Assembly (NCBI GenBank): GCA_964199315.1
Contig: OZ116698.1
Location: 44,144,001-44,208,000, forward strand
Direction of reading: 5' to 3'
Length of the DNA: 64,000 bases
Origin: Orbicella franksi
Taxonomy: Eukaryota
Within the stretch, counting starts at the first letter, position 1, and the number at the start of each line of letters is the position of its first letter. The position numbers were made by a program, and so were the translations under genes. The notes under the pieces are model-generated. The model was given only the letters and a program-made list of their open reading frames with translations. It searched no databases and had not been told where the DNA came from. Shown piece by piece: positions 11,252-21,440 of this stretch.

Positions 11252-11585
11252 TCCGGGGGGGTATTCCGAGCAAAATTGGGTAGGGGTGTGCGGCCCGTTT
11301 CCCAAAATCGCGATTTTCAATACTCTATTTATGACCTGACCCAAAATCTATATCCTGTTTCAGACCTGTCTTATACTTAGTTCCCTAGTTCAGACCGATG
11401 TTAAAGGCATTATGAAGGGCCTTTGTTGGTCGGTCTTATCGATAGTGGTATAAAAGTAGCTTCTTCTAAAAAAAAAAAATGCCTTATTCAAGACTAGAGT
11501 GCAAAAATCAGACCCTATTAATGATCAAAATGTCCAAAACCGATACCCTATCTTGACCAAAACGGCTGAAAAACGATCATATCCC
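11252..11585. mobile_element. Second, 3'-truncated copy of the 6285-7085 family
   Basis: Shares aaaattgggtagggg..gcggcccg, tatttatgacctgacc, aaagtagcttcttct, caagac.agagtgcaaaa and aacggctgaaaa in the same order. Confidence 0.75.
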
Positions 11586-11784
11586 TATTATCTGACGGGC
11601 CCGTTTCTCTGGAGTACCCAGTGTCTAAACACAACACTATTTTGCGCCAATGCCCTAGCCTGATACGACCCGTGAAAGCCTTACAAATAGCGGGGAGCAT
11701 AGTTGCGGTTGGAATGGATTAGTCTGTTTCGTAAAATGGGAATCACTGGCGATGTTGAAACTCATGTATTCCTTTTTCTTTTAG

Positions 11785-12970
11785 TGGGAAAGATTTTTCG
11801 CTACACCATCAAACGCGTTACAGGGTTTGGCGAATTTTCAAGGTATAAGCTTAAATGCGTTTTAAAGAGTTGTTTGTTACGAACACACTGTGCTCTCCAT
11901 CCGACCGATTTTGGCTAATTTCTCCTGGCAATTTTATAATTACTTCGTGTTGCAAAAAAGTACTTTTTTCAAATGATACCTGAAACTGGCTGGGCAACTA
12001 AATGTACATTGTTAAGGCGCATAATGACTTCAGTGAGGGTATGGTTCCAGATAATTGAGCGAGTGAATCTGTGATTTATTTACTTCACTACTGCTCCTCG
12101 CCATTAAGTCAAAATACAATAACATACCGTAGACACGTGAACGAAAACGTAGAAAAGTTGAAGTCAGGGATAGAAATCAGCGCTAGCAAAAGCATATACA
12201 CATAACTATATTGTTTTTTCCTTTATTGTCATTTTTGCACTTGTTTTGCTTTGTTATTTTCCCGATAGAGTAATTTCATCCTTTCTGGTCTAACGGAAAG
12301 GAACTACCGAGTTCTTCACCGTTGAGCCACAAATAGCTAAAAGGAATCTATCGCAATGGGTCGACGCACTTGCGAAGTTGGCCAAAAAAGTCTGGCGTTT
12401 CTCCACCGGTCTAAGACCTTTACCAGGGGAAAGTTTCTTATCTGCGACCTACAAGGTGAGGGACACAACTTTGATCAGTGAATGCAATCGATCTTTGTCA
12501 TTAGCTATTTTTTGTTTGTTTGTTTGTGTTTTAATTTCGTTTTTCAGGTACAGTCATTCTGTTATTAACGTTACCTTTACTTGGAACCCATTTTAGAGTA
12601 AACGACACTTTTACATGTTGGATCCACGCTTCTTAGGGACAGACGATGCGCTCAAAGACCTCCGAGTGGCGTCCTTGGACACGGGGTAAGTTCACGGCAT
12701 TTATCGTTGCATGAGGGTTAAATAATTTGGAAATTCACATAACTTCATTCAAAATTATGTCTTCACAGGTTGTTTGGTGTTGGAAACCTGGACGGAGACG
12801 TATTCAAAACTTTTCAGGTTTCGCACAATTGCAATCTCTATTGCAAACTCCTGACTATCGACCGCAAGGAAGATAGATTCCACTCTTTGGATTATTCTTT
12901 GAATTACCTGGTCAAAGGTTGCTCCCGAGAAAGGGCAGATTGTTATTATTTGGATTATTTTAAACAATGA
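11785..12970 (+). pseudogene. Alpha-kinase (eEF2K/TRPM7/ALPK family) catalytic-domain C-lobe, four exons, disrupted
   Basis: GT-AG exons 11785-11842, 12269-12455, 12597-12685 and 12769-12970 give ...GEFSRVISSFLV*RKGTTEFFTVEPQI / ...SLAFLHRSKTFTRGKFLICDLQG / FYMLDPRF... / LFGVGNLDGDVFKTFQVSHNCNLYCKLL. These match the alpha-kinase motifs VEx(Y/F)I, AFSH, DLQG, DP, GxGNL and H-x-C-x3-C. In-frame TAA at 12291-12293 and two frameshifts. Confidence 0.8.
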
Positions 12971-13325: not shown

Positions 13326-14164
13326 GTAAGAATGTTAACACTCTTTTTATGTATAATCTAAACTAAGTGACTTTACGTGCTTACGTTTACACGTACTCGG
13401 CTATGAAAACGTTTGTCTGCATAAACGATCGTAATTTCCCCCGCGCTACATCCGCAAAAATCCTCGCAGCATGTACGCGCTGGATGTGCCGCACGCGATG
13501 GCGCAATTTGTTCTAAAAATACCAAAATTGTCCCATATCATAGGGACAGCCCTAATACTTGAAATTTCGTTAAAGATGTATAAATGGAAAACCAACATTT
13601 CTAACTATCCAAAACTTTCTGGGCGCGTGCTTTGCCGGAGGATCGACTTTTGGCTCTGAATCTCTCTACCTCAGGTTTTGAAAAACGCCTGACAATCAAA
13701 CCCTAGTCTGTACAAAGACCTTCTATTTTGTCTTGAGTTGGTCGAGATCGAAAGCTTAGCAAAACATTAAACCGGCGCGTGGGACATGAACAAGCCAAAA
13801 CGCAAGGGGTGGGGCTGAGAAGAGACAAAAACATGTTTTCGTCCGCTTTTCCGTGGCTCTCGCGCTCTACGAAAAAACCACACATTGCAAACCCAAGCTT
13901 TGCATCGCTTCTGGAAAAGCAACTACGCGTGCAAGTATTATGCAAAAATTCCTCCTGCTTTTGCAAATTACGTAATTAGGTAGGTTAGACGCGCGCGCAG
14001 TTATAATTAGTCAGTGACATCATACTTGCCATGCGCGCGTGTACGCTAACTGACACAAGACGCAACAATTCAGTAACTGTCGCAAAGACGAGAAGGTTGT
14101 TTACAGCTAACCAAGGAGAATTTTGACATTATTATCAGCTGTTGAGTTCCTGAGAAAAGTGATC

Positions 14165-14578
14165 ATGGAATCTCCCCGGGAGAAAAGACCAGTACAGTCA
14201 GCTGTGTTTACCATACAAGATGGAAAAAATGCTGCCGCAAGATTGCAACGGCAAATCAACGATCTTGAAGAACGACTTAAGAAATACTTCCAACGTTTAG
14301 ATGAACTAGAAAAGTTCTGCGAGAGAACACAAAACAAATTTGAAGATACCCAAAGACGAATAAGAGAAGAATACGAGTTGATTGAGAAAGAACACGCCAA
14401 GAGAAAAATTGATCGTACTGCGACTCGCAAACGGATAAACGAAAAGATTGAGAGAAGGAACGAGAAGGCAGCGCAGTCCACGGACGAAAACGACCAAGAT
14501 GTGCCAGGAAATGTTTTAAAACAAACAGTAACAGCTTCTGCGGAACTTAAAGACATTAACAGTTTTGAAGTACGGTGA
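14165..14578 (+). CDS. Orphan coiled-coil protein, family copy A (137 aa from ATG)
   Basis: E/K/R/Q-rich helical ORF with a good start context (atcATGG). By-eye ungapped alignment to copy C gives 35/78 identities (MESPREKRPVQSAVF vs METALEKRPVQSAEF). Confidence 0.7.
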   Translation: MESPREKRPVQSAVFTIQDGKNAAARLQRQINDLEERLKKYFQRLDELEKFCERTQNKFEDTQRRIREEYELIEKEHAKRKIDRTATRKRINEKIERRNEKAAQSTDENDQDVPGNVLKQTVTASAELKDINSFEVR

Positions 14579-14711
14579 AGTGTATTGTTAGATATGTAAG
14601 AATAGGTTTCTGTCTGTTAGTTATGATGAAAACTTTGTTAATCTCGGTAGTCCGTAAGACCTATAAAGGAAGCAAATTAGAAGAACAGGAATAAATTTTT
14701 GTACAACTAGC

Positions 14712-15245
14712 GTGAAATACGTGTTGAAACCTGCTGAATACAAAATACCTTTGCAAACAGCTGAATTCACCTTAGAAGACTCGGTGAACGAGAAAACTGC
14801 GCGATCATTAGAATTGCTGCAAAGCATAATCAAAGGACCCTATGAGACCACGACTAGTAGGTCAACTTACTGCAATTTGTTAAATTTGTATTTTTATTTT
14901 GTTTTATTGTTTTCAGAAGGGCTTGTTGGAATGAAAAAAATAGCAAAAAATGGAAAAAATACTGACGTGACAATAGTTCAGTGAAAAGCGCAAACGAACA
15001 AAAAAATATTCTCCAATCTCAGCAAAAAGCGCTTCAGATCAATCACGCACATGAAAAATTTCTCGTGTCAGCTGGCGAGTGAACTTTGTTGCTGCTGTTT
15101 AGTCTTCCTCTCACCTTTCTTGCCGTTTATGTTTGCAACTTTTCATTGCTTGGCGAAAGACAACAATTGTTATCTGTATGGTCGGTTGTGTTCCCACCGG
15201 AGACTCACAGAGAAAACATCAAACCATGGGTTTCACCGGAAGTAA
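14712..15245 (+). pseudogene. Orphan coiled-coil family copy B, degenerate (one in-frame TGA, possible 60-bp intron)
   Basis: Carries the family motif KIPLQTAEFTLED. ORFs 14712-14984 and 15051-15245 are in the same frame with only the TGA at 14982-14984 between them. Ends in a Cys-cluster plus hydrophobic segment (LCCCCLVFLSPFLPFMFATF), like the tail of copy C. Confidence 0.45.
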
Positions 15246-15275
15246 TTACAAGTGAATGGTAGGTGCTTAAAGTTA

Positions 15276-15565
15276 GGCCAAAAGGCACATGAGCCATGCA
15301 GAGCTTATCCCGGTTTCTATATAGCATGAAGCGACTAGTAATATTTCTACTCTCCCCCCCCCCCGGATGGGTTGTTGGGGTCCATCTTATGGCTACCTCC
15401 CAGCATTAAATTTACCGGTACCCATTTATACACCTGGGTGGAGAGAGGCATTGTGAGAGTAACGTATCTTGCCTGAAAACACAACGTGATAACTCCAGCC
15501 AGTGCTCGAACCCAGACCATCCCATTCAGAGTCCAGAGCCCTAATCATAAGGTTACCACCCCTCC
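15276..15565 (-). mobile_element. tRNA-derived SINE with Nin/Deu-like core
   Basis: Minus strand has a tRNA-like head with B box GGTTCGAGCAC (15502-15512), followed by CTCTCTCCACCCAGGTGTATAAATGGGTACCGG, which I recognise as a core of cnidarian SINEs. Confidence 0.75.
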
Positions 15566-15888
15566 AAAGGTGCGTTCTTTGAAATGAATAATTAGTTTTA
15601 CAAAAGATTTTGTTCTCGAATTCTTGCTCTTGTTGTTGTCAAGTTGATCAAATAAAATGGGAAACTTCCAGTCTAGAGTTGGACGTTGACTTCGCCTTCA
15701 CGTGTAGTGCCGACGTTATTTGTTCACGTTATTTCATCGTCCACGGATAACGCTCCTTACGGTTCTGTTCCGGAATTTTTTATCTTGGTGTTGTAAATGT
15801 AAAATGTAAATGCAAATTTAATATCAAACACAGGGAGTGCTTGCGCAATCACCCGAGTCAGAGGCTTATGATAAACTGCTTGACAATA

Positions 15889-16048
15889 ATTAGGATCGAA
15901 CTGGAATTTGGAAATGTTGGTTTTTTGAGGAGAGGGGAAAACCGGAGTACCCGGAGAAGAACATCTCGGAGCAAGGAAGAGAACCAACAACAAACTCAAC
16001 CCTCATATGACGCCGGGTCCGGGAATCGAACCCGGGACACATTGGTGG
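15889..16048 (-). mobile_element. tRNA-derived SINE with V/Meta-like core, 5'-truncated
   Basis: B box GGTTCGATTCC (16022-16032) and core TTCTCCGGGTACTCCGGTTTTCCCCTC on the minus strand. Confidence 0.75.
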
Positions 16049-16285
16049 TCCCTGCAACTAGTCCCGTGAAGAGTTTGCGTGAAAGGACTGGTCGCAGGGA
16101 CTTGTCCCACGAACAGTTCACACGAAGCGTTTTAAGGAACAAGTCTCAAGGACTTGTCCAAAAAATTCCAAGTGGTTTGAATTCATGGGACTAGATTTTG
16201 AAGAAAAAATGGTCAGTTAACACGATGCATGGGACTTGGTCCCCGTGACTTGTGGCAGGGACTAGTCGCCTCGTGTGTGAGGACC
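16047..16285. mobile_element. Truncated TTAA-terminated element with GGGACTAGTC/GGGACTTGTC repeats
   Basis: Repeated gggact(a/t)gtc motifs; ends gtgtgtgaggacc|TTAA; abuts and truncates the SINE head. Confidence 0.55.
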
Positions 16286-16444
16286 TTAACGCTGCTATAC
16301 CTTCCTACAAGCGCGCGCTTCCAGACAAGACGTAATTCAATTGTTACGTATTAACAATGGCTATTACAAAGACGAGATAATTGAGTTAGGTTGTAACCAA
16401 GCGAGCGCAGTTTTGAAATGACAAAATAAATGTTGAGTATTAGT

Positions 16445-16906
16445 ATGGAAACTGCTCTGGAGAAAAGACCAGTGCAATCAGCTGAATTTTCCAATCAAGA
16501 GAGGAAGAACGACATCACAAGATGGCATCGACAGATTTGTCTACTCACATATACACTTGAAAAACACTTTCTCGGTGTAGACGAAGCCGACAAGTTGTGC
16601 CAACGAGCGCAAGAAGAACTGCAAACCTTGGGGCTGAAAATGAGAGAGAAGTACGAAATTATAGAACAGAATGCAGCGAGAAAACTCGAGCTTATTTCAG
16701 CTCTTATTGAAGTGAAGAAAAAACTTAAAATGGAACTGGAGAATGCTGCAAGAGCGCTGGAAGAAATGATTTCTGACGAGGCACAAAACGCGTTAAGATA
16801 TGAAGGAAGTGCCTTGGTTTGTCGCTGTATCAAGACTGGTTGCGCTGTAGTGTTTAACACTATAGCCGTTTATGCGCTTTTTAGAATAATACAGTTTTTT
16901 TTCTAA
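16445..16906 (+). CDS. Orphan coiled-coil protein, family copy C, with a C-terminal hydrophobic (tail-anchor-like) segment (153 aa; upstream ATG at 16430 possible)
   Basis: Paralogous to copy A; heptad-rich helix followed by LVCRCIKTGCAVVFNTIAVYALFRIIQFFF at the very C-terminus. Confidence 0.7.
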   Translation: METALEKRPVQSAEFSNQERKNDITRWHRQICLLTYTLEKHFLGVDEADKLCQRAQEELQTLGLKMREKYEIIEQNAARKLELISALIEVKKKLKMELENAARALEEMISDEAQNALRYEGSALVCRCIKTGCAVVFNTIAVYALFRIIQFFF

Positions 16907-17809
16907 CTACAGATGGACTTGGGGATTATCCTCTAATAGGAACTGAGTACTGTTCTACTTTACTCTTGGGTTCGCATTTTAGTCTAATTGTTGTGTGAGG
17001 CTAAAAAGCTTAGCAATCTTGATTTAAATATAGCAAGCAAATTCGCAAACGTGGAAATAATATTTCTTCTCATCAGCAACATAACCTTGCGAATACATTT
17101 TACTGGTTTCTCGATGACTATGTTGTAGTTGCTTTCCATATTGCCTGTATGACAGTTAGATAACAGGTACAAAACTGTACCCTTTACTGTACTGACAAAT
17201 GGTGCACTAGTGTGTCTTGTACCGCTCTTACAAGTCTAACAGTATAACATTCTCGGGAGAGACTGTCATATAAAAACGTGTTCAACCTCATGAGCTCCAC
17301 AGTGGGAGCTTTTGCTGTACGGTATTGAGCCGAAGAAAACAGGACGGGAGAGATTTGAAAAGTAAGCAATTGTCGGTGAGCCCATCTTTTCTTTTAATAG
17401 ATCACTTACTTTACTCAGAAAAAAAAAAAATCTCTTTTGTTGAATTGAGTCAAGAGATTATGATCCTTCATTTTCTCTTGATTGAGTACGTTTTCCTCAT
17501 ATCTAAATTCCACTTGTGTAACTTCTTTTCAGTTATTATTGAATGTTCTAAGCTAAAATCATCTTAGAATAACGAAAACGTCTAAAAACGCATGGTCTTC
17601 AATGCGCCTTATTTCGAAAACAAACACGTTGACACCCCATTTTTTTGCCTTTTTGGTAAAAGTTGATCCTTACCTTACCGCATGGTAAATCTGTACGCGT
17701 GAACATTTTGAGCGCGAAATTCCTTAACCTCCCTTGCCTTTAAATTATTATAAGAATTGTGCCATTGCATACCCTATACCACCAGAGTATATTATACGTA
17801 CTTTAACTA

Positions 17810-18232
17810 CAGTCGAACCTCTCCATACGGACACCCGGTCTCTCATACCTACAGTTTCCTATGTACCGACAAAATTCAGATACATTTCCTATAAAAATAA
17901 CCCTCTGTTAAAGCAGACAACGGACACTAAATCTCGGCCCTAGGAAGCAAATTCATACAAATTTAACCTTTTTATTACGGACACTCCGGGACCAGGTACC
18001 ATTTCCTGCAGGCGGTTACGCAAACTTTGAAACTAATTGATACCAATACCAGAACATGTCAAAATGTTAGTTTTCAAAACTTACATTTACAAATGCAAAT
18101 AAATTAATACTCTAAGCTGTCAGTGAAGACTTAAAAGTGACGTCATCATAGTGATCTCTCCAATACGGACGCCTGTCTAATACGGACACTTCGCTCTGTC
18201 CCTTCGGTGTCCGTATCAGAGAAGTTCGACTG
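17810..18232. mobile_element. Tc1/pogo-type MITE
   Basis: TA|CAGTCGAACCTCTCCATACGGACACC ... GGTGTCCGTATCAGAGAAGTTCGACTG|TA; subterminal tacggacac repeats. Confidence 0.88.
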
Positions 18233-18428
18233 TATAACTATGACACGTTTCCAACGCTATATGAATACTATAATCTTACCTTTGAAAAATAATTTGTATA
18301 AGATAACATATCTTTTCTCGATTACTGCTTAGTGAAACATTCTGGCATTCTGATTGGTCGGAAATCAGACGTGCGCGTTATCATCACTCTTCAAGGCGTG
18401 GCTGCTAAGCCAAGCCACATTTGCTGTG

Positions 18429-19208: not shown

Positions 19209-19527
19209 CAACCTCGTTCCCAGGGTCTCTCATCTTACCGCCCCCTTGAGCGAGCAAAGAGAGACCCTGGTTGGGTCTGGTCACGTGTCTCCCAGAGTCT
19301 GGGAGATGACAATTAAATTATTGAAGGGATTGGCGGCCTAGTAGGAATTTTGTCTATACTTAGCCCACGGGAGTGCGGGATATGTTATCACCAAGGTAAA
19401 CCAAGAACGATATGTTCAGCGGCAATGTCTGGCAGTAATATTCTGCAAACGCTGAGGAAAACTTATCCATCGTCTAATAGCGGAAATCCAAGTCACAGTA
19501 AGATGAGAGACCCTGGGAACGAGGTTG
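19209..19527. mobile_element. MITE with perfect 30-bp TIRs and a 9-bp target duplication
   Basis: CAACCTCGTTCCCAGGGTCTCTCATCTTAC (19209-19238) and its exact reverse complement (19498-19527); CTCACTGGT at 19200-19208 and 19528-19536. Confidence 0.92.
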
Positions 19528-21440
19528 CTCACTGGTGTGACAATAAACATGAGGGTGCTCACTGGTGTGACAATAAGGACAAGGGTGTTCACTGGTGTGA
19601 CAATAAGCACAAGGGTGTTCACTGGTGTGACAATAAGCACAAGGGTGCTCACTGGTGTGACAATAAACACAAGGGTGCTCACTGGTGTGACAATAAGCAC
19701 AAGGGTGCTCACTGGTGTGACAGTAAGCACAAGGGTGCTCACTGATGTGACAATAAGCACAGGGGTGCTCACTGATGTGACAATAAGCACAAGGGTGCTC
19801 ACTGATGTGACAATAAGCACAAGGGTGCTCACTGGTGTGACAATAAGCACAAGGGTGCTCACTGATGTGACAATAAGCACAGGGGTGTTCACTGGTGTGA
19901 CAATAAGCACAAGGGTGCTCACTGGTGTGACAATAAACACAAGGGTGCTCACTGGTGTGACAATAAACACAAGGGTGCTCACTGGTGTGACAGTAAGCAC
20001 AAGGGTGCTCACTGATGTGACAATAAGCACAGGGGTGCTCACTGATGTGACAATAAGCACAAGGGTGTTCACTGATGTGACAATAAGCACAAGGGTGCTC
20101 ACTGGTGTGACAATAAACACAAGGGTGCTCACTGGTGTGACAATAAGCACAAGGGTGCTCACTGATGTGACAATAAACACAAGGGTGCTCACTGGTGTGA
20201 CAATAAGCACAAGGGTGCTCACTGGTGTGACAATAAACACAAGGGTGCTCACTGGTGTGACAATAAGCACAAGGGTGCTCACTGATGTGACAATAAACAC
20301 AAGGGTGCTCACTGGTGTGACAATAAGCACAAGGGTGTTCACTGGTGTGACAATAAGCACAAGGGTGCTCACTGGTGTGACAATAAACACAAGGGTGCTC
20401 ACTGGTGTGACAATAAACACAAGGGTGCTCACTGGTGTGACAATAAGCACAAGGGTGCTCACTGGTGTGACAATAAGCACAAGGGTGTTCACTGGTGTGA
20501 CAATAAGCACAAGGGTGTTCACTGGTGTGACAATAAGCACAAGGGTGTTCACTGGTGTGACAAGCACAAGGGTGCTCACTGATGTGACAATAAGCACAAG
20601 GGTGTTCACTGGTGTGACAATAAGCACAAGGTTGCTCACTGGTGTGACAATAAACACAAGGGTGTTCACTGGTGTGACAATGAGCACAAGGGTACTCACT
20701 GGTGTGACAATAAGCACAAGGGTGCTCACGGATGTGATGATAAGAACAATGGTGCTCACTGGTGTGACAGTAAGCACAAGGGTGCTCACTGGTGTGACAA
20801 TAAACACAAGGGTGCTCACTGGTGTGACAGTAAGCACAAGGGTGCTCACTGGTGTGACAATGAGCACAAGGGTGTTCACTGGTGTGACAATAAGCACAAG
20901 GGTGTTCACTGGTGTGACAATAAGCACAAGGGTGTTCACTGGTTGACAATAAACACAAGGGTGTTCACTGGTTGACAATAAGCACAAGGGTGCTCACTGG
21001 TGTGACAATAAGCACAAGGGTGCTCACTGGTGTGACAATAAACACAAGAGTGTTCACTGGTTGACAATAAGGACAAGGGTGTTCACTGGTGTGACAATAA
21101 GCACAAGGGTGCTCACTGGTGTGACAATAAGCACAAGGGTGTTCACTGGTTGACAGTAAGGACAAGGGTGCTCACTGATGTGACAATAAGCACAAGGGTG
21201 TTCACTGGTGTGACAATAAACACAAGGGTGTTCACTGGTGTGACAATAAGCGCAAAGGTGCTCACTGGTGTGACAATGAGCACAAGGGTGCTCACTGGTG
21301 TGACAATAAGTACAATGGTGCTCACTGGTGTAACAAGCATAAGCACGAGTGTTCTCGCTGTTGTAATAGCCATAAGCACAAGGGTGCTTGTTTGTGTGAA
21401 TACATGCCCAAACCTAAGGTGCTCACTGGCTTGATAGGCA
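19528..21440. repeat. 30-bp minisatellite, about 60 copies, consensus CTCACTGGTGTGACAATAAGCACAAGGGTG
   Basis: Directly visible (two units per 60-nt line); decays into degenerate units up to about 21540. One degenerate unit lies left of the MITE at about 19170-19208. Confidence 0.98.

Follow-up and report, generated by a model that had tools for sequence, protein, structure and literature searches.

A tailed and a tail-less paralogue of a small, fast-evolving helical protein family in the coral Orbicella franksi

This study examined a stretch of 64,000 nucleotides from the coral Orbicella franksi (NCBI GenBank assembly GCA_964199315.1, contig OZ116698.1, positions 44,144,001 to 44,208,000 of the forward strand; hereafter the window, numbered from its first letter) and found evidence that two short genes in it, A and C, are probably real, intronless and independently transcribed paralogues of a small, fast-evolving family, in which C would be a membrane-anchored form and A, having lost the tail, its soluble partner or competitor. 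We hold this reading with moderate confidence. It builds on the paralogy of the two genes, their conservation, the purifying selection acting on them, their synteny, the structure of the family, an element shared upstream of its genes and the loss of the tail in A, all of which were observed; membrane insertion, the choice of membrane, oligomerisation, the interaction of A with C and expression are the parts that we infer. The two genes lie as follows.

14165-14578, plus strand: gene A, an intronless open reading frame (ORF) of 137 codons, with its ATG at 14165 and its stop at 14576-14578.
16445-16906, plus strand: gene C, an intronless ORF of 153 codons, with its ATG at 16445 and its stop at 16904-16906.

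The frame of A is free of stops from position 14123 and that of C from 16430, and the start codons could be fixed because the orthologues begin with MES or MET. An earlier note, made from the sequence of this stretch, had proposed a tandem family of three genes, and this held for A and C, which are paralogues. Recomputation over the first 78 ungapped residues gave 35 identical positions, or 44.9%, in agreement with the 45% reported before, and BLASTP aligned the two proteins with an E value of 4e-23 and 36% identity across 124 residues. The alignment of A and C also contains the three features named earlier: the N-terminal motif EKRPVQSA.F (EKRPVQSAVF in A, EKRPVQSAEF in C), the invariant Cys of FCER/LCQR, and RE.YE(L/I)IE. 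Only 13 frames in the 64 kb of the window run for at least 137 codons without a stop, and other species have kept both ORFs, so that A and C are far beyond what chance would produce. Long ORFs also run antisense over both genes (14107-14556 and 16495-16860, minus strand), and are an ordinary by-product of AG-rich helical coding sequence.

The ratio of nonsynonymous to synonymous substitution rates (dN/dS) was estimated pairwise by the Nei-Gojobori method with a codon bootstrap in ten comparisons. It was 0.23-0.35 for A and 0.32-0.48 for C, comparisons at dS > 1 included, with bootstrap 97.5% bounds of 0.45-0.76 overall (0.47-0.65 for A, 0.56-0.76 for C), and was significantly below 1 in nine of the ten comparisons. 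Constraint in A was strongest in the first 80 codons (dN/dS 0.13-0.18, against 0.3-0.7 in the remainder), and frames of 129-154 codons remain intact at dS > 1. Between close species, the coding sequences (CDS) differ by no indel or by one of 12 nt; A shows none in pairwise comparison, its multi-species alignment having gap runs of 1 nt where the 3' end is divergent, and all coding indels in C are multiples of three. The flanks of the two genes, by contrast, carry many indels of 1, 2, 4, 5, 8 and 10 nt at similar nucleotide identity (81-85% against 83-87% in the comparison of flanks with CDS between close species). The earlier proposal that the long open frames reflect selection is thus borne out, both by ratios of 0.23-0.48 with upper bounds of at most 0.76, well away from 1, and by the multiples of three. 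From the sequence comparisons, A and C appear to be fast-evolving proteins under moderate constraint, and clearly not neutral.

Orthologues of C form 12 clusters of 68-99% identity, nearly all 153 amino acids (aa) long, and those of A form 25 clusters of 54-98% identity, typically 131-137 aa long. None of the A orthologues carries the tail, and the C-terminal end proper to A is conserved in many of them; among all of these clusters none comes from NCBI or UniRef and none is named. Nearly identical DNA also occurs in several coral species and in runs that carry the label "coral metagenome". The order of A followed by C between the same alignable flanks was kept in three other assemblies (loci L001, L002 and L015). 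L002 contains A and C. In L015, from a distant coral at dS > 1, the A-like gene encodes 129 aa and has no tail, and the C-like gene encodes 154 aa and has one. L001 contains A, C and then a dead A-like copy, A' (11425-11814), which is 79% identical to A and meets a stop after 44 codons; this additional copy indicates that copy number at the locus turns over. In a fourth assembly with the two side by side (L014, 9331-13590), A is intact but only a remnant of C is left, a 257-bp deletion having removed the ATG and about 55 codons; an ORF of LINE-type reverse transcriptase lies just downstream of the truncated C. It is this lineage that supplies the one exception among the selection estimates, as dN/dS of A there was 0.66 with a confidence interval up to 1.24. 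Because the ratio of A is higher where C is broken, A may depend on C, and these estimates hint at a functional coupling of the two genes.

Concerning the C-terminus, the earlier description of C as ending in a Cys-containing hydrophobic tail that A lacks was confirmed. The tail of C spans residues ~122-153 (nt 16808-16903) and has juxtamembrane Cys residues; its Kyte-Doolittle maximum over 19 residues is 1.79 (residues 135-153), against 0.12 in A, and 1.54-1.69 in clade D, a third group of the family described below. The difference between the two genes is kept across species. In C the hydrophobic segment lies only at the extreme C-terminus and the N-terminus is hydrophilic, which is the arrangement of tail-anchored proteins (one C-terminal hydrophobic segment and none elsewhere), its value being borderline with respect to the usual threshold of 1.6. 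R/K and Cys flank the segment, a conserved polar or acidic residue lies in its middle, and clades C and D have in common the tail NALRY..SARVCR.IK.GC...(D/E/N)...AYALFK.T..FF. Gene A keeps only a pre-anchor relic, GNVLKQTVTAS, which aligns to QNALRYTTSAR, and diverges after it. Since clades C and D share the tail and A holds only its first part, the anchored form is ancestral and A a tail-less derivative. The AlphaFold2 model of C is a single helix over residues 13-152, with a mean pLDDT of 82 and values above 90 in the centre, and a crude heptad check counted 5-7 of 8 a/d positions in parts.

Using a profile built from the A and C orthologues, the 497-Mb assembly was searched for further members, and the genome proved to hold at least 11 family loci. 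The two genes are adjacent paralogues, as proposed before, and the family extends beyond the confines of this locus. The loci are given below.

The window (C1:44,144,001-44,208,000), plus strand: genes A and C, two of the 11 loci.
C1:27241844-27250343: five tandem copies with a period of ~2 kb, belonging to clade D (L006-L010), from the profile search.
C6:20.19 Mb: two family loci, from the profile search.
C1:26.92 Mb: a single family locus carrying a stop, from the profile search.
C1:34.23 Mb: a single family locus, from the profile search.

The profile scored A at 2e-61 and C at 1e-58, having been built from their own orthologues, and the paralogues at 8e-20 to 2e-9. Stops are present in three of the 11 loci (one array copy, one C6 copy and the one at C1:26.92 Mb; L010-L012); the other four array copies are intact, encode ~157 aa and have the tail-anchored form, and the interrupted one has a TGA. 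The family core, L(Q/H)RQ..L...(L/V)..YF..(L/V)D..E..C, is present in A and in C. In a maximum-likelihood tree, three clades were resolved, namely A (support 93/97), C (87/89) and D (100/99). Since the two genes of L015 fall within clades A and C, the duplication that produced A and C is older than the split from that coral.

When 1.84 billion representative proteins were searched exhaustively with the profile, only 28 matched at E <= 1e-3, nearly all of them short and none named, and a search with an array paralogue added 57 matches, one of them named. This is LOC144648283, an "uncharacterized protein" of Oculina patagonica in NCBI, which resembles the family in being a clade D member 58% identical to the array paralogue, with the tail and the upstream block in common, and differs from A and C in belonging to another clade, at ~30% identity, with no function attached to it. 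Only two members are sourced from NCBI, both of clade D (P0116, the named protein of Oculina, and P0113). In Oculina patagonica CM126635.1, 10001-19804 (L040), we found three intact, single-exon, tandem clade D copies, and the NCBI gene models there, of 156 aa and 337 aa, seem to join parts of adjoining copies into spliced chimeras; the public annotation of the family in Oculina is thus probably wrong. The family appears to be restricted to corals, having been seen so far only in stony-coral data.

Sequence blocks upstream of the start codons are also conserved, and several of them are common to the two genes.

13968-14093, plus strand: promoter-like 5' region of A, with blocks conserved in the A orthologues of five other assemblies, some at dS > 1.
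13968-13975, plus strand: TTACGTAA, upstream of A.
~13991 and ~14033, plus strand: GCGCGC blocks, upstream of A.
~14052-14065, plus strand: GACACAAGACGCAA, upstream of A.
~14083-14093, plus strand: CAAAGACGAGA, upstream of A.
16311-16377, plus strand: promoter-like 5' region of C, with blocks invariant or nearly so in C orthologues, including that of L015.
~16311-16318, plus strand: GCGCGCGC, upstream of C.
16337-16349, plus strand: TCAATTGTTACGT, a 13-nt element found family-wide, upstream of C.
~16367-16377, plus strand: CAAAGACGAGA, upstream of C.
14690-14695, plus strand: AATAAA, the likely polyadenylation signal of A, 114 nt past its stop.
17028-17065, plus strand: 3' region of C homologous to the polyadenylation region of A, with GGAAATAAT where A has GGAATAAAT.

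The upstream regions of A and C have the GCGCGC, AAGACG(C/T)AA and CAAAGACGAGA blocks in common, and cores like TTACGTAA are typical of bZIP sites. The exact 13-nt element TCAATTGTTACGT occurs 20 times in the 497-Mb genome, with no excess over a reversed-pattern control (28 occurrences). Six of the 20 sites precede start codons of the family by 108-130 nt, and they represent three independent lineages of paralogues: C, a C6 paralogue and four of the five C1-array copies, L007 being the one that is without it. The Oculina copies retain the block with one or two changes. The fact that the element is kept in paralogues whose proteins are just ~30% identical argues for a shared regulator. The other 14 copies of TCAATTGTTACGT were considered as markers of hidden family members and discarded, as no family ORF lies downstream of any of them.

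At the 3' end, AATAAATTT at 14690 is invariant in a four-species alignment and lies 86-114 nt past the stop in the orthologues. The corresponding 3' block belongs to a direct-repeat family, D3, with 71% identity and a spacing equal to that of the genes, and it is conserved in the C orthologues. Because both the 5' blocks and the 3' region are homologous, the tandem duplication must have taken the whole unit, from the 5' blocks through the 3' end.

Based on this evidence, the history and working of the pair can be outlined conditionally. The ancestral member would have been a protein of ~155 residues, consisting of a short N-terminal peptide, a coiled-coil-type helix of ~110 residues with the invariant Cys, and a C-terminal anchor-like tail. 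C would be inserted post-translationally into an organelle membrane through this tail, with the rod and the EKRPVQSA.F peptide remaining in the cytosol, and would probably pair with other copies through the rod. A would have arisen from a C-like gene by a tandem duplication reaching from the promoter through the polyadenylation site, and would then have lost the anchor while retaining the peptide motif together with the first half of the rod, which is conserved. Having kept the motif and this half of the rod without the anchor, A would most likely work in soluble form, either as a partner of the anchored protein or in competition with it.

The closest general likeness of C is with the tail-anchored class, of which the small coiled-coil protein CCDC167 and the Fis1/Mff-type adaptors of the outer membrane are examples; tail anchors of modest hydrophobicity are often found on mitochondrial outer or peroxisomal membranes. 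Like such proteins, C lacks an N-terminal hydrophobic segment, has one hydrophobic helix in its last ~30 residues with basic residues on its flanks, and has a small helical rod that is predicted to be cytosolic. The family differs from them in having no sequence relation to the class (the Pfam CCDC-167 model matched A at the noise level, E 0.77-0.85), in the weak hydrophobicity of its tail, with the conserved acidic or polar residue in the middle, and in having a naturally tail-less paralogue.

Several observations weigh against this reading and should be considered together. The tail is borderline (Kyte-Doolittle 1.5-1.8) with a conserved D/E/N in its middle, and it could be an amphipathic helix lying on the membrane surface instead of an anchor spanning the membrane. 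A prediction of the A+C complex (residues 1-122 of C with residues 1-110 of A) gave no verdict, with a score of 0.00 in a run made without controls, and is no evidence either way. Constraint is only moderate, and the identity of the CDS barely exceeds that of the alignable flanks; the relaxation of A where C is broken was seen in one lineage only. Apart from the two clade D members, no member comes from NCBI or UniRef, and A and C are unannotated. In addition, ~10 million reads were sampled from each of two raw poly(A) RNA-seq runs, whose source organism matches the window at ~99% DNA identity, and 0 of them fell on A or C. The 'metatranscriptomic' contigs of two runs cover the genes and the spacers at similarly low depth and, because the spacers are covered as the genes are, look like carried-over DNA, and the Logan contigs that contain the ORFs are collinear genomic pieces that include the spacers, not transcripts. 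A and C are silent in at least one sample. Eleven runs labelled as RNA contain the A stretch, four of which are poly(A) libraries from one study with 61-70% of the sampled words, so that, judging by word content, expression of A elsewhere is plausible.

Only one part of the stretch covered by the read analysis, at 17809-18300, did have real poly(A) reads, at ~5-7x and with the first mate on the minus strand. Its joints and loose ends are built of a repeated unit like CTCTAATACGGACAC, and it is probably either a repeat that is transcribed or a piece of another gene.

A first alternative is that A and C are genuine genes that work independently of each other, the C and D members being membrane-associated structural or adaptor proteins and A having an unrelated soluble role exerted through its own C-terminal end (…ELKDINSFEVR). 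The conservation of that end in many orthologues speaks for such independence, as do the low identity of the two proteins (36%) and the difference between their heptad cores (for instance LLTYTL in C, DLEERL in A), and the complex prediction lent binding no support, though without a verdict in either direction. Nevertheless, A retains the most conserved parts of the family, namely the N-terminal peptide, the YF..LD..E..C core and RE.YE.IE; it has stood next to C since before a split at dS > 1, and it seems to be less constrained where C is broken. We therefore regard independence as possible but unlikely, and the pairing of an anchored C with a soluble A as the better account of what A has kept.

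It is improbable, in our estimation, that the frames are untranslated and stay open by chance through an AG-rich composition poor in stops, the region being either an element conserved as non-coding sequence or at the RNA level, or genes that died recently. The lack of reads in the two poly(A) libraries and of annotation in public protein sets would fit this explanation, as would the long antisense ORFs, which show that the composition suppresses stops, and the near equality of CDS and flank identity. What it leaves unexplained is a dN/dS significantly below 1 in nine of ten comparisons, the survival of frames of 129-154 codons at dS > 1, and the restriction of indels between close species to multiples of three inside the frames and not outside them. 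Furthermore, the truly dead copies look different, as seen in A' of L001, in C of L014 and in the stops of L010-L012.

As to known families, the earlier note did not recognise this one, and the searches made here gave the same outcome. Pfam scans of 20 members found no significant family, only noise-level coiled-coil matches; sequence-profile searches of the PDB identified no family apart from the EB1-chimera lead treated below; a feature search of the ESM Atlas gave best scores of 0.76 for C and 0.83 for an Oculina member, with no family; and a Foldseek search of the C model against the AlphaFold DB clusters gave E > 6, a search that is uninformative for one long helix. The note had allowed for a TRIM coiled-coil fragment or a transposon ORF1, and neither was recovered: none of the TRIM and transposon ORF1 Pfam models matched, and TRIM5 chains appeared in the PDB profile search only at E 0.19-0.4. 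Its comparison with SNARE-like proteins has to be abandoned. The Pfam models SNARE, Synaptobrevin, V-SNARE_C, Sec20 and Use1 were absent at E <= 1-10 in A, C and 15 other members, and matches to the syntaxin N-terminal domain were at the noise level (E 0.04-0.09, in three distant members). The family is like SNAREs in its helical heptad region followed by a C-terminal anchor, with cysteines beside the membrane segment, and unlike them in the absence of a SNARE-motif match and in having no conserved zero-layer Q/R that could be assigned. BH3-like and FFAT-like readings of the YF..LD core, made by eye, were rejected, as key positions vary across the clades and the segment is helical.

The lead mentioned above concerns EB1. 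The best PDB matches of a profile of all three clades are engineered chimeras which share the EB1 segment LEKERDFYFGKLRNIELICQ (E 0.0018 and 0.0032), and this segment aligns to the most conserved residues of the family, LE...D.YF..L..(I/V)E..C. By hhalign, the EB1 exon of this coral itself aligned over the same 29 columns, with a P of 0.008 and a probability of 4.9%. One could then suppose that the family descends, distantly and in truncated form, from the EB1 C-terminal coiled coil, and that YF..L..(I/V)E..C builds a docking groove for partner peptides as it does in EB1, here tethered to a membrane. Native EB1 chains, however, were not found at E <= 1 in the PDB profile search, which indicates that part of the chimera score came from the non-EB1 halves. 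The 41-position Pfam EB1 model PF03271 matched no family member at E <= 10 by hmmscan and, on the six-frame genome, found only the true EB1 gene on contig C12. The likeness to the EB1 C-terminal domain (PF03271) is confined to this segment of ~20 residues; the family lacks the fold-back helix, the second one that completes the EB1 four-helix bundle, as well as the acidic tail and the calponin-homology domain, and is membrane-tailed instead. Descent from EB1 is therefore highly improbable, and the resemblance, which does not amount to membership, is only a lead.

That the ORFs belong to a mobile element or a virus-derived repeat, as its exons or its cargo (a transposon ORF1-like coiled coil, for example), is scarcely credible, since their intronless tandem arrays, lineage-specific changes in copy number and nearby repeats and LINE are set against just ~11 loci in 497 Mb, a stable position between the same flanks in several species, no transposon or viral Pfam domain, no terminal repeats around the units, and conserved promoter-like blocks that belong to the genes themselves.

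If A and C are indeed an anchored protein and its soluble partner or competitor, a bolder extension may be drawn, which we consider rather improbable as a whole. The family would then be a set of coral-restricted, membrane-tailed helical adaptors under a deeply conserved cis-regulatory module (GCGCGCGC ... TCAATTGTTACGT), with A acting as a dominant-negative or release-form regulator beside C, and with the conserved YF..L..(I/V)E..C core perhaps offering a docking surface of the EB1 kind, through which partner peptides or the machinery of microtubule ends would be connected to an organelle membrane.

Lineage-restricted genes make up a large and poorly understood share of coral genomes, and the short intronless ones are largely missed by annotation. 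The present family is now defined by three clades, by a conserved tail and a conserved core, the latter with its invariant Cys, and by an upstream element in common. Its architecture, that of a small tail-anchored helical protein, is ordinary in itself; a natural pair of anchored and soluble forms offers a clean experimental handle, and the 13-nt element provides a route to the regulator, and hence to the family's stage or cell type of action. These data do not tie the family to calcification, symbiosis, reproduction or stress.

The remaining feature of the locus lies between the two genes and had been taken for the third member of the tandem family.

14712-14984, plus strand: 'copy B', not a conserved gene; its likeness to the family is confined to 14742-14768 (KIPLQTAEF).

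The B frame begins shortly 3' of the AATAAA of A. BLASTP found nine of 25 residues identical to the family, and the A+C profile, run on six frames of the intergenic DNA, matched ~22 residues at the N-terminal motif with 5.9 bits and an E value of 0.004; a profile of C only gave E 0.06-0.09. In the orthologous DNA of L001, L002 and L014, the frame is interrupted by gaps of 13, 12, 14 or 1 nt or by a stop. The ~22-residue match together with the disruption in three other corals rules out B as a third gene, and B is at best a relic, probably what is left of the 5' end of an old duplicate, if it is not a match by chance. Nor does it share the Cys-rich hydrophobic tail of C, as had been proposed, since the Cys-rich hydrophobic stretch downstream of B, in the same frame, lies past a stop and showed no match to the family tail. 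A second A-like match of 21 nt inside B (14947-14967) was dismissed as A-rich and weak. Within the B frame, 14856-14916 has the look of a short intron of ~60 nt (GT...polypyrimidine...CAG), and L001 and L014 preserve it in part.

The spacer between B and C contains two highly repeated elements with a SINE-type look, at 15300-15560 and 15900-16290, whose word depths reach ~110,000 in the contigs of the RNA runs, with many loose ends; ARAGORN found no tRNA-derived SINE head in them. Farther along the window, a minisatellite occupies 19522-21388, with a 30-nt unit repeated 62 times at 91% matches, and it accounts for the very long spurious ORFs that occur there in several frames.

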